Below are positions 54,761 to 64,000 of a stretch of 64,000 bases of DNA, piece after piece. Origin of the DNA: Ascoidea asiatica JCM 7603 (lineage: Eukaryota; Fungi; Ascomycota); assembly GCA_001600695.1 (NCBI GenBank), contig BCKQ01000007.1, positions 94,040 to 158,039 of the forward strand. The letters are read 5' to 3'. Position 1 is the first letter of the stretch; every line of letters starts with the position of its first letter. The position numbers and the translations under genes are program-made. The notes below the pieces were generated by a model, which was not told the origin of the DNA, searched no databases, and saw only the letters and a list, made by a program, of their open reading frames with translations.

Positions 54761-55693
54761 TTATATTATTTTTTTAAAATTACTATTACTATTATTATTA
54801 ATCCCATTGTCTATGTTATTATAATCATCATTTATATTATCATTATTAATTTCATTATTCTTTTTATTTTTATTGAAATTAAATCTATCATATAATTGAA
54901 AAAACTTTTTATAAAAAATCCATTTGATTAAAATATAAATCATCATTATTCCATCGAATTCTGGCCATAAAATATTTAAAAATAATATATATATACTTGA
55001 AGATATACTAATTTCCCAAAGTAAAAAATCACTAAATCTATAAACGTTTGAGGTTCTAATTAGAATATCTAATTTTGGTAAATCTTTTGTATATAAATGT
55101 GAACTTATACTATTCTCATTTATCTTTTCAATATCTTTAAATTCAGTTTCTTTTATAACCTCTTTTATTGAATGAGTTATATCATCTCTTGATGTATATG
55201 GAATACATATATTTAGTACTGCTTTATTATTATTTTCAGTTAATTTTTTAACTTTTTTCATTAATTCTTGTATATGTAATGGTAATAAACTTATATCTCC
55301 ACTAACTTCAATTTTAATTCCATATTTCTCACATAAATCATTATGATGAACGATTTGTAAAAATTTATTCTCAAATAGTTTCATTAAATTATCAATTTCA
55401 AATTTACTTCTTTTGAAATTTTCAATTGAAAATGCATATATTGAAACTGTATGAACTTTACATTCATAACAAATTTCTAAAATTTCACTTAACGAATTAA
55501 ATCCTTCAGAATGCCCATCTTTAACTTCGATTTTTTGTTTTTTTGCAAATCTTCTATTCCCATCCATTATAAATCCAATATGTTGAGGCTTGAAGGAACT
55601 TGTATTTATAGATTTAGTCAATGTTTCTTTGATGAACACAATCAACTGATAATATCCTGGAAAAGTTCTTATCCATGATAAATTTAAAGCCAT
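54761..55693 (-). CDS. RER2: cis-prenyltransferase (dehydrodolichyl diphosphate synthase) catalytic subunit
   Basis: PQHIGFIMDGNRRFAK, GH..GF, YAFSIENFKRS, LNICIPYTSR, DILIRTS...FSDFLLW. The short N-terminus with 'PG' resembles Rer2 more than Srt1. Confidence 0.88.
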   Translation of the reverse strand: MALNLSWIRTFPGYYQLIVFIKETLTKSINTSSFKPQHIGFIMDGNRRFAKKQKIEVKDGHSEGFNSLSEILEICYECKVHTVSIYAFSIENFKRSKFEIDNLMKLFENKFLQIVHHNDLCEKYGIKIEVSGDISLLPLHIQELMKKVKKLTENNNKAVLNICIPYTSRDDITHSIKEVIKETEFKDIEKINENSISSHLYTKDLPKLDILIRTSNVYRFSDFLLWEISISSSIYILFLNILWPEFDGIMMIYILIKWIFYKKFFQLYDRFNFNKNKKNNEINNDNINDDYNNIDNGINNNSNSNFKKII

Positions 55694-59440: not shown

Positions 59441-61394
59441 ATTTAAAAAGAGTTTATTAAATGAATTATTGAATAAGTTAATAAAGAGATTAAAAAGTAA
59501 ATTATTAAATTAATATAATAATTTGTTATTAATATAAAGGGGGGGATAAATATAAATATAAGTAAATTTAAAGATAAAAGGAACAAAAAAATGAAGTTTT
59601 AATAATCTTGAAAACTAATTTTTTTTTATTATCTTAGATTGAAACTAGATTGAAACTAAATTGAAATTACAGTAAAGTGAAGCAAAGTAATATTATTATT
59701 GTAAGAGTTAGATATTAGTTTGAAAGAAGTTAAATAATTTGAATTTATCAAATAAAACTTGTATTTTTGATAAAGGATTTCGAATAGTTTATCAAATTAT
59801 GATTATTATTATGATTATTATTATAATTAATTTGAGATTGATTTAAGATTGATTTGAGATTAAAGAGAATAAATATAAAAGAATATATAAATATAAATAT
59901 AAATATAAATATAAATATGAATATATATATAAATAAATATGATTTTATATTACAATAGGTGATTAAGAATATGTTATGATAAAATATAAAAAACAAAATA
60001 TTAAATAAAATAGAATCTATTAGTAAAATAGAATTTGATATTGAAGATAAATAGTATATTATCAAAATATTTGTTTGGAAATTTATGTTTATTTGTATTT
60101 GTTTGTATTTATTCAGCTTGTTTGTTATCAATGTAAAATAGAGATAATATGAGGATAATATGAATATATTGGACAAGATAACTCAGAGAAGGAGGAAGAA
60201 GAGCACTCAAGAAGTGGTTTTATTACTGTTATTATTACTACAGCACGGGCGCACTGCATTTTGTATGGCATTTGGCTCATTGGCGGTGTGGGCTGTATTT
60301 GGAACAACTGCTAGCTCCACCGCAGCACAGGCTCCAGTGGCAACATTGGAAGCAGCCGCTGTGTCCCGTGTAAAGCAGGTAAGTCACAAGCTTGTCAGGT
60401 GCTTTGTTTTCCCCGTGACACAAGCTTTTCTATGAGATAAAGCCACGTGCTTCTATCTTTTTCTTTTTCTGCTTCTTCTTGTGTTTCATGACTGTTTCAT
60501 ATTTCCTCTAAACATGTTTTGATTTAGCAGGGGCACAGCATCCAAATCCTCTACTAAACGCCACCCTTGTTTATGTTTTGAGTGGCCTGTTTCCACATCA
60601 ACTGCTTTTCTCAAAAAGGGTCTATGTGCACACACGCAGTCAGTGTGTCATGGTGCACGTACCCACGTTATTTCCAAGCCGCAACGGCAACAGCGTCACA
60701 TGATTGATTAGTCATTGCTTATCTAATTATTTTTGGGGTTTCAATTTGAATCCCAATACATGGATGTCCTTCATTAGTATTATTTATTGTCTTACTTCAT
60801 ACAATACAACAACTTTAGTATATCAAGATGATAAAAGGTTGTAATTTGAGTATTTCATATATCTTTTTTGAGATTTAATTTGAATAATGAAATTTAGTTA
60901 GTACTTTGATTCTTTGAAATATTTGTAGACATATTACTGAGGAATTGAAAATCAATAGAATCTTTTGTTTGATATTTTTTTTTAAATTGTTTATTTTTGA
61001 AATAAATATTACATAGATTAATGTTAATTTGTTTATTTCAATCAATTATTCACTTTATTTATTATTTAATAATTTATGATTACAATATCATTTTCAAAAA
61101 TTTTGATGTTTTGAATTAATTGTGAGTAATTTACCAAATTTAGATAATGTTGACAGTCTTAACACTGTTAACAATGATAACAGTTACTTTTACCGAACTT
61201 CAGGCTTATGTTCATTCATTCTTTGCGGAGCAAATTTGTTTATTGTTTAAAAATCATATAAAAAGGTCAATCAATTTCATAATTTTTTTTCAAATCAATT
61301 AATTCTTTATTTTAAATTCTATTCAATTTTATTCAATTTTATTAATTGATTAAATTTACTATTATACATATATTTTAATAAGTATTTTAATTCA

Positions 61395-61910
61395 ATGAAG
61401 CTTTATTCAGCTTTAAGATTAAGAAAAGATTATCAATCAACACTTGGAAATCTTTTTACTCGTATAGAAAATAATTGTGTTGTTCAAGAAGGTTTTAAAC
61501 CATCTGAAAATCCAAATGAATTATTAATTGAATATTTAAAAATTAGTGAAAAATTTATGAATTTAATTTCTGATATTAATATTACAAATTCAAAAAGTAA
61601 ATTTAAATTTAATGATTCAAAAATTTTAAGAACAATGACTGAAGCTTTAGCTGAAAGAGATCAATTACAAAAAGAATTTAGTATTTTAAAATTAATTACT
61701 GAAGAAGGTGTTGTTAGTGAAGAACTTTATTCCAAAGAAGAAATTAAAACTGTTTCTCTTGTTGATATTTCTGATTTTCAACAAAAAGCTTCTAAAGTTG
61801 CTATAAAAAGAAGAAAACTTGATGATTTAATAGAATTAAAAAATTTTGAATTAGAATTAATTACTACTTTTAATTATGATGAAGATGATAAAAATGAAGA
61901 TCAAGAGTAA
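61395..61910 (+). CDS. DIP1984-family ('septicolysin-like') coiled-coil protein of bacterial type
   Basis: Matches the recalled family pattern along its whole length: MKL..AL..R.D.Q, R..NN..VQEG.KP.E.P.ELL, IN.TN, TMTEALAERD.L, YS..EIK.VS.VD...Q, R.LD..I...N...EL. TATA-like CATATAAAAAG near 61255. Confidence 0.8.
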   Translation: MKLYSALRLRKDYQSTLGNLFTRIENNCVVQEGFKPSENPNELLIEYLKISEKFMNLISDINITNSKSKFKFNDSKILRTMTEALAERDQLQKEFSILKLITEEGVVSEELYSKEEIKTVSLVDISDFQQKASKVAIKRRKLDDLIELKNFELELITTFNYDEDDKNEDQE

Positions 61911-61920
61911 TATTAATTCA

Positions 61921-61972
61921 ATGCTTTATTAATATGCTTTATTAATATGCTTTATTAATATGCTTTATTAAT
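61921..61972. repeat. 13-bp tandem repeat (ATGCTTTATTAAT)x4
   Basis: Four exact copies starting 11 bp after the stop codon of the DIP1984-like gene. Confidence 0.9.
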
Positions 61973-62500
61973 GGATTTTTTCACCGATATTACTTGGTGT
62001 CATATATTAAACAGTTATTATTATTTTTTTTTGTCAAGATTTATTCTTAGACTCAGGACATAAAATGAATTCAAGAATAATAATATTACTTGATGGTATT
62101 ACTTGATGGTATTTACTGATGGTATTTCTTTATTTTGATTGTTGTTGGTATCACTCTTTGGAAAGGTGGATAATACACCACGACTTTTCCAGACGCAATA
62201 TTTACGTTAACAATTTACAAATCAAGTCGTTACTTTTACAAATTATTATTATTACCATATTATCAATTTTCAAAGAGTGAGAGGGAGGGATTGGGGATTC
62301 CAATCAAAATATAAAGAATGTTTTAATAAATATTTTTAATAAATGTTTTTAATAACAAAATTATTTTTATTTTAAAATTGTAGTTTTTTACAAATAATTT
62401 TCTATGACTGACGTTATATAAAAATTGAATTTTTATATTCGAGTCCAATTTTCTGGGTCATTAAGAATATTTATTAAAAGTATTTTTCTATTGAATTAAA

Positions 62501-63427
62501 TTATAAATCTTCAGAACCTTTTAAACCTGTTGATTTAATTTCATTTAAATTTATTAATTCATTTATATCAATCTTAACTTTACCATCTTTATTATTGATG
62601 TAATTTGAATTATGAGTGAAATTATAATTTTCAATTTGATTTTTAATATCTTTAACAGTTAAATCTAATAAAATTTTTAAATATAATCTATTTAACCAAA
62701 TTATAAATTTTGGTAATATTTTACCATCATTATTAAGTTTATTATATTCAGTAGCTTCAGTTAAAATGATTTTAATTTTTGTTTTGCTATTACTATTACT
62801 ATTCCTATCATTATTATTTTCATTATTTTTATTAATACTTATATTATTATTGTTATTGTTAAGTTTTGTATTTATATATATCTCTTTATAATTACAATTC
62901 ATTATTCTCCATGGTAAACCAAATTTACTTAATTTTTCAAAAAAATTGATTATATTCAAATTATTATTATTCCATTTTATTAAAATTGAATTTGAATTTT
63001 TATTTAAAATTTCAAAATTTTCAAAATTTAAGTTATAATTGAATAAAAAATTCAAATTTAAATAATTATTAATTCTAAAAATATTTAAAAAAATGAAATT
63101 TCTTAAATTTTTGAAATATTTTAAATCTTTTAAAAAAAATTCATTTATATCATTTGTATCATATTTACTATTATTCATTTTACCACTACATAAATCAATT
63201 TCTTCAGATATAAATGAATCACAATATCCAATATATTTTGAATGATTTCTATCGAATTTTTTATCATTTATAATTTCTTGAATTAACATATCATTTGGTA
63301 ATATATATATTGGATAATTATCATATTTGCAATTTATCTTATATCCATAATATATTGAACCTATTCCAATTCCTATACTACTATATTTAATCAATTTTCC
63401 AAATCCAAATTTCATTCTAACAGCCAT
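62501..63427 (-). CDS. Uncharacterised protein with an N-terminal basic leader and Gly-rich hydrophobic anchor (possibly mitochondrial)
   Basis: 308-aa ORF. MAVRMKFGFGKLIKYSSIGIGIGSIYYGY leader, and complex blocks GLPWRIM and DGKILPKFIIWLNRLYLKILL. Confidence 0.75.
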   Translation of the reverse strand: MAVRMKFGFGKLIKYSSIGIGIGSIYYGYKINCKYDNYPIYILPNDMLIQEIINDKKFDRNHSKYIGYCDSFISEEIDLCSGKMNNSKYDTNDINEFFLKDLKYFKNLRNFIFLNIFRINNYLNLNFLFNYNLNFENFEILNKNSNSILIKWNNNNLNIINFFEKLSKFGLPWRIMNCNYKEIYINTKLNNNNNNISINKNNENNNDRNSNSNSKTKIKIILTEATEYNKLNNDGKILPKFIIWLNRLYLKILLDLTVKDIKNQIENYNFTHNSNYINNKDGKVKIDINELINLNEIKSTGLKGSEDL

Positions 63428-64000
63428 TTTAAATGTATTATGTGAATCCTTATTGATTTGTTATTCTATTACTCTATTACTCTATTATTTTATTACTCAA
63501 TTGAAATATTTATATCACTTAACATATATAAATATACCCAGGAACTTATTGATTTCATTATCTTTATTATTATCATTTATCATTTACCATTGATTTATGA
63601 TTTGATTTTTGGGTTTTAGAATATCACACTCTTCTCAAATCACGTATAAATATCCACTTTGATAAAATTATATTATTGTTGAGGAGAAATACTAAGTGAA
63701 GTCACATCATCTCTATTTGCAGACACAACATCTCTATTTGCAGATATTATTTCCTATTTAGGAAGTAATGTTGTCACGTTTTTGAAAAATGAACTTTTGA
63801 AAAAGCTCAGCGGAAATCACCCAAAATCCGGAAAATAACCGCATTTGAATCCGACAAAGGATTTAAAATCGGGTCCGAAGGTTTTAAGAGTGACCAGAAA
63901 GTATTAACATGGGAAGCCAGGTACCCTCTATAAATGGAACATATATTTTAAGTGATATGTTTAAAAACCGTCCACTCATTTACCGGAAATGACAAACCGG

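Follow-up and report, generated by a model that had tools for sequence, protein, structure and literature searches.

A DIP1984/DUF6847 gene of probable bacterial origin, resident and multiplied in the genome of the yeast Ascoidea asiatica

The genome of the budding yeast Ascoidea asiatica carries what we take, with a probability of about 0.8, to be a resident and intact gene whose product is a soluble, all-helical member of the DIP1984/DUF6847 family and which derives from a single old transfer from a bacterium to budding yeasts. The gene lies on contig 7 of an assembly of 20.3 Mb (71 contigs, 24% GC), within the 64,000-nucleotide stretch of DNA analyzed here, which we call the window. According to this reading, one old transfer would have left descendants scattered over the orders Serinales and Ascoideales; the gene would already have adjoined RER2 before this lineage split from that of Saccharomycopsis; and later it would have adopted the extremely AT-rich codon use of the host and multiplied to at least five intact copies. 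An earlier note on this DNA had presented the gene as a bacterial-type gene and a candidate for horizontal transfer into this yeast chromosome. The bacterial type stands; the gene is not private to this yeast, however, as a clade of yeast homologs is already present in public databases (such as DEHA2F27258p and PGUG_03586). The features discussed below are listed in Table 1.

Table 1. Features of the window and of the 171-aa protein (nucleotide positions refer to the window; those of the GC-rich island are approximate)
Feature	Position	Strand	Evidence or remark
DIP1984/DUF6847 family CDS, 171 aa, single exon	61395..61910	+	ORF, NF038048, PF20935 and 3kdq matches, AF2 model
Family domain of the 171-aa protein	residues 1-155		NF038048/PF20935
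Clade-specific acidic tail of the 171-aa protein	residues 156-171		
RER2 (cis-prenyltransferase), synteny anchor	54761..55693	-	
GC-rich island with CACGTG motifs	60190..60710	.	between the divergent upstream gene and the DIP1984 gene
Non-coding element, 220-400 bp 3' of the stop codon	62130..62315	+	

The open reading frame is intact and intronless, as had been claimed from the sequence: its 171 codons run uninterrupted from ATG to TAA in one exon. No CTG codon is present among them, and its translation is thus independent of how the host decodes CUG. The product is a full-length DIP1984/DUF6847 protein. It matched the NCBIfam model NF038048 (DIP1984_fam) with 132.7 bits against a cutoff of 70 (E = 1.1e-38), residues 2-155 covering the model from end to end (1-149 of 149), and the Pfam model PF20935 (DUF6847) with 125.5 bits against a cutoff of 27 (E = 2e-36), residues 10-155 again covering the model in full (1-141 of 141). 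The founding structure of the family, PDB 3kdq (DIP1984 of Corynebacterium diphtheriae), was matched by sequence with an E value of 2.3e-14. These matches confirm the family membership that the earlier note had read from an order of short motifs, and the motif order itself proved genuine. DUF6847 was the sole domain detected in the Pfam scan of the protein, with no cytolysin domain, and searches of the defense and phage libraries PADLOC and PHROGs gave no usable match.

Structural modeling agrees with this assignment. In the AF2 model, which was built on 58 family sequences (pLDDT 95.1, pTM 0.82), the protein has the fold of 3kdq: Foldseek paired the model with 3kdq_A at an E value of 4.3e-8 (TM 0.84/0.95), and VIA-align superposed the two with a Z score of 15.5 and an rmsd of 1.1 A over 151 of 152 residues. 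The predicted fold is all-helical and consists of two long antiparallel helical hairpins with a tiny beta-sheet cap (~20 kDa), matching the founding fold, in which four long helices form two hairpins with small beta bridges. The two proteins also share the motif order and a single domain of ~150 aa, at 32% identity. Beyond 3kdq, both Foldseek and VIA-align returned only generic helical hairpins (Z scores of 9.3 or lower in the latter), and no pore-former was ranked above them. In the ESM Atlas, like shapes were found in DUF6847 clusters as well as in unnamed clusters from Bacillota and phages. Prediction of a homodimer gave a score of 0.30, compared with a mark of 0.32.

Several differences from 3kdq and the DIP1984 family in general are evident, apart from the fact that the gene sits in a eukaryotic chromosome. 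In the yeast protein, five residues are inserted into the loop that follows helix 2, and an acidic tail of 16 residues is added. All seven invariant columns of the family are retained (M1, L3, L7, Q31, N65, R140, and N150), and four of the 18 near-invariant columns are altered (E5 to S, D133 to S, Q147 to E, and W151 to F). Because four near-invariant positions have changed, the activity of the window copy may have shifted away from the family norm. The replacement of the usual terminal NW by NF and the acidic tail had both been pointed out before, and both are real. At least 90% of the 58 family members carry W151, and every copy of the A. asiatica genome has F in its place, which sets these copies apart from the other yeast homologs, while the tail is common to the paralogs on contig 4 and the proteins of Saccharomycopsis crataegensis.

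The gene is resident in the host chromosome. Its neighbors in the window are fungal (RCC1/SRM1, MET17, a fungal tRNA ligase, ICE2, LEO1, an amino-acid transporter, a cyclin, and RER2), in line with the eukaryotic flanks described previously. The best named match of this MET17 is an Ascoidea protein at 81% identity, all others being at 78% or less, as expected for an Ascoidea-like budding yeast as host. The GC content at third codon positions (GC3) is 3.5%, within the range of 2.5-12.9% observed in nine neighboring yeast genes, so the host-like codons reported in the earlier note are also found; the gene is fully ameliorated to host codon use, which is far richer in AT than that of the other yeast homologs. 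The GC-rich island upstream exists as reported, with ~50% GC in a genome of 24% GC and a single copy in the genome, and may serve as a promoter region common to both divergent genes. A TATA-like element is present too, but it means little at such a base composition. Downstream, the non-coding element is kept 3' of the window copy and of three near-identical copies on contig 4 and was found nowhere else in the genome. Between paralogous loci it is 77% identical overall and ~90% identical in its core, compared with 67% for the coding sequence. It may act as a 3' regulatory element or give rise to a small RNA. An Rfam scan of positions 59441-64000 of the window, which cover both the island and the downstream element, gave no match. 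Further downstream lies a convergent ORF of 308 aa (62501-63427, minus strand), for which no Pfam family was found.

The family has expanded within this genome. At least five intact DIP1984 copies are present, namely the window copy and four others within 65 kb on contig 4, where the neighbors are pseudouridine synthase, STE3, polyubiquitin, and TRK genes; the start of a further copy on contig 4, at 1286199, runs into an N gap of the assembly. By comparison, the named homologous yeasts have one or two copies. A 3.3-kb segment of contig 4 is duplicated (1288020-1291364 and 1321320-1324650) with 99.3% identity, and an inverted partial copy of it occupies 1291982-1292939. Within this segment lie a DIP1984 copy and a PseudoU_synth_2 ORF, and a tRNA-Pro(tgg) gene marks its end. 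The segment, in which three contig 4 copies are located, is of foreign composition, with 30-37% GC and a GC3 of 26-32% against 2-13% in host genes, the GC3 of the window copy and of the paralog C4_1350k being ~3%. Such a GC-rich segment has possibly arisen by gene conversion among the repeats or by recent import from a GC-richer relative. The paralog C4_1350k (contig 4, 1350643-1351158) is the most divergent one, with altered core motifs (including ALAERD) and an odd amino-acid composition, and is flanked by tRNA-Ile, tRNA-Pro, and tRNA-Val genes; it may be drifting under relaxed constraint. Crude NG86 estimates of dN/dS for the window copy were ~0.2 against the other contig 4 and Saccharomycopsis copies and 1.4 against C4_1350k, values that are unreliable with synonymous sites pinned to A/T.

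Homologs were found in other yeasts of the genera Scheffersomyces, Debaryomyces, Meyerozyma, Suhomyces, and Diutina (Serinales) and Saccharomycopsis (Ascoideales). Named homologs from single species include Debaryomyces hansenii DEHA2F27258p, Meyerozyma guilliermondii PGUG_03586, and Scheffersomyces stipitis XP_001383026; others occur in Meyerozyma sp., Suhomyces tanzawaensis, D. fabryi, D. tyrocola, and Diutina catenulata. Two copies with the same acidic tail and 54% identity are encoded by S. crataegensis (DASC09_056210 and DASC09_000980). Like the A. asiatica copies, with which they form the same monophyletic clade, these homologs are single-exon genes in ordinary chromosomal settings: the S. 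stipitis copy is located on a 2.7-Mb chromosome between BRF1/RNR1/RPB2, and further copies in Logan contigs lie beside eukaryotic ORC3, DAGAT, proteasome, and bZIP genes. An entry deposited under the basidiomycete Naganishia cerealis shares 90% or more of its residues with PGUG_03586 and looks like contamination of that assembly by a Meyerozyma-like yeast.

One of the two S. crataegensis copies is directly downstream of RER2, and in the window RER2 is found 5.7 kb upstream of the gene. Since the two are linked in both genomes, the locus goes back to an ancestor that both of these Ascoideales yeasts share. Next to the S. crataegensis copy there is no counterpart of the 479-aa gene that lies upstream in the window, and apart from RER2 in that species, no neighbors common to the window and the loci of other yeasts were found. 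Moreover, no protein of Ascoidea rubescens was among the matches of the searches, and the presence of the gene is thus patchy even inside the Ascoideales group.

Among bacteria, the family is widespread. An exhaustive profile search yielded 2010 representative clusters at E ≤ 1e-3; among the best 150 of these, ~20 were yeast-like and the remainder were proteins of 150 aa. By a single N-terminal peptide pattern, relatives were detected in the genomes of at least 579 bacterial species, and the family is represented in Bacillota, Chloroflexota, Acidobacteriota, Pseudomonadota, Campylobacterota, Cyanobacteriota, and Deinococcota. It is also carried on 347 PLSDB plasmids (340 of them from Acinetobacter) and in a few phage records. 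In the searches run, all named eukaryotic matches came from Serinales and Ascoideales yeasts, a patchy fungal presence of the kind that a transfer had been expected to leave.

A maximum likelihood tree of 91 rows and 158 columns was built under LG+C20+F+G4 with PMSF and without an outgroup; its deep nodes are weak. All 29 yeast rows fell into one clade with a support of 92/96, together with one long-branch metagenomic row that comes from a compact, prokaryote-like contig. When yeast monophyly was imposed, the tree was 9.1 lnL units better than that of the free search (AU test, p = 0.80). On this phylogenetic evidence, the yeast copies are monophyletic. The bacterial group nearest to them comprises Acetobacter, Lichenicoccus, and Advenella (Pseudomonadota) along with unnamed metagenomic rows, at weak support. 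Because the tree has no outgroup, we infer the direction of transfer, probably from bacteria to yeasts, from taxonomic breadth, with many bacterial phyla on one side and two yeast orders on the other. The same breadth underlies the nesting among bacterial sequences that the earlier note had anticipated, the tree being unrooted. Taken together, the large number of bacterial clusters and species genomes, the supported yeast clade, and the host-like GC3 uphold the proposal of an old, ameliorated, and domesticated bacterium-to-yeast transfer.

Other explanations of the locus fare poorly. We consider the chance of an assembly artifact or bacterial contamination to be negligible: no point in its support was found, and it is contradicted by a GC3 that agrees with host genes, by five copies among yeast genes on two contigs, by RER2 synteny common to another yeast, and by the presence of the locus in an independent study of the same organism in 2023, whose contigs contained 89% of the locus words. 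Vertical descent of an old eukaryotic or fungal gene, with loss from nearly all other lineages, would be in keeping with copies in two yeast orders in ordinary chromosomal contexts. However, the family is overwhelmingly bacterial, with its clusters spread over many phyla, the yeast sequences make up one shallow clade, and no named match from any other eukaryote emerged from the searches run, which makes such an origin highly improbable.

With a single transfer from bacteria to yeasts as the preferred reading, the spread between the two orders may have been either vertical with many losses or from yeast to yeast. In the published budding-yeast phylogeny, Pichiales, Phaffomycetales, and Saccharomycetales descend from the ancestor that Serinales and Ascoideales share, and vertical descent would therefore need many losses. 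In the tree, the Saccharomycopsis and A. asiatica copies form a clade (100/98) nested in a subgroup with Diutina, Scheffersomyces, and Debaryomyces (98/88; inner nodes 82-93), which hints at a secondary yeast-to-yeast move. It is conceivable, although we hold it somewhat short of an even chance, that bacteria gave the gene to the ancestor of Serinales (CUG-Ser1) and that Ascoideales obtained it later from a Serinales yeast. Such a route is suggested by this nesting, by the lack of named matches from other budding-yeast orders, and by the location of three contig 4 copies in a compositionally foreign segment. Nevertheless, an alternative tree in which the Serinales members of the subgroup formed their own clade (a group named after the tree had been seen) was not rejected by the AU test (p = 0.416, lnL difference of 6.0). 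In addition, an alignment of 158 columns is short, the two deep yeast subgroups could instead represent an old duplication with differential loss, and the GC-richer contig 4 copies fall together with the remaining A. asiatica copies in the tree. A more elaborate version appears doubtful, namely that a single bacterial acquisition and a move from Serinales to Ascoideales were followed by ongoing copying as a foreign 3.3-kb cassette (DIP1984 gene, 3' element, and pseudouridine-synthase gene, ending at tRNA-Pro), with copy number under selection, for which the expansion to five copies reported in Malassezia globosa would be a parallel. If true, it would point to a dosage-dependent protective function recruited from bacteria by fungi more than once.

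As to function, UniProt names both yeast and bacterial family members 'Septicolysin'. Septicolysin (delta-toxin), a protein of Clostridium septicum, belongs to the cholesterol-dependent cytolysins (PMC8696124). For DIP1984 proteins the label is a misnomer, because the true septicolysin is a large cytolysin of that class, while the protein studied here is small and hydrophilic and lacks a signal peptide. In fact, the database name is the only likeness between the two: compared with the large, secreted pore-former of C. septicum, the yeast protein has 171 aa and neither a cytolysin domain nor a signal peptide nor a hydrophobic segment. Its pI is 4.9, its GRAVY is -0.59, and its maximum 19-residue hydropathy is 0.69; the hydropathy check revealed no signal peptide and no hydrophobic or membrane segment, and the start is the conserved Met1 of the family. 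Nothing found here supports the membrane-active or antagonistic role that the earlier note had considered possible: the protein is hydrophilic, and the label belongs to an unrelated cytolysin.

A secreted or membrane-active toxin directed against competitors or hosts is, in our view, very unlikely. The idea could draw on the UniProt name, on the expanded copy number in this genome, on the carriage of the family by Acinetobacter plasmids, and on papers on Malassezia, which repeat the toxin reading. In that genus, a 'septicolysin-like' gene has been reported as a horizontal transfer from bacteria; M. globosa is said to carry five copies, and the copy number to differ among strains (bioRxiv 10.1101/2020.01.28.923367, Ianiri et al.; PMC12239588). 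The likeness is that of a bacterial gene labeled 'septicolysin' in a fungus, membership in the same family being suggested by the shared label only; as the recipient is a basidiomycete, it would be an independent transfer. Against the toxin reading stand the identity of the true septicolysin, DUF6847 as the sole Pfam domain, the absence of a secretion signal or hydrophobic stretch in 171 hydrophilic residues that begin at a conserved Met1, fold searches in which pore-formers did not surpass generic hairpins, and the detection of the Meyerozyma ortholog in the soluble cell fraction.

We find a cytosolic protein better suited to these data. No conserved gene neighbor was found in 80 bacterial loci, where the commonest neighbor family occurred in nine; the clusters are lineage-specific, such as those with lipoproteins in Campylobacter. 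This agrees with a protein that acts on its own and whose gene can be passed on singly. The DIP1984 gene of Pyrinomonadaceae belongs to one of these lineage-specific clusters, together with genes for a Ro60/TROVE-vWA protein, an HNH endonuclease, and an unnamed protein of 149 aa. The yeast protein presumably acts alone inside the cell and not as a cytolysin. PGUG_03586 of M. guilliermondii was differentially expressed with Mn2+ in a soluble LC-MS/MS proteome (listed in Table 1 of PMC7042463), and this proteomics table was the only literature found that names yeast DIP1984 genes by accession. A member of the D. hansenii cluster is also present as an MMETSP transcript. For A. asiatica, none of the runs recorded as RNA contained the locus. 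The gene might encode a dosage-sensitive, stress-associated cytosolic protein whose conserved polar motifs, located at both tips of the helical bundle, would bind a ligand or partner. The tip motifs are QEG..P.E.P, INxTN, YS.SEIK, and NW/NF. This suggestion is our best guess and is made with low confidence, the Mn2+ table from another genus being the sole experimental hint.

That yeasts can carry bacterial genes is familiar, and the yeast DIP1984 clade was already contained in public proteomes, so that the surprise is moderate. Nonetheless, the locus offers a clean and well-supported case of a bacterial gene that became fixed in budding yeasts, persisted there over a long period, and later multiplied. 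It also corrects the reading of these proteins as septicolysins or pore-forming toxins that has spread in the fungal literature. The family has a solved structure and, misleadingly labeled as a toxin, is widely carried by resistance plasmids of Acinetobacter; tractable yeasts with one or two copies (D. hansenii, M. guilliermondii, and S. stipitis) provide an easy genetic route to its function.
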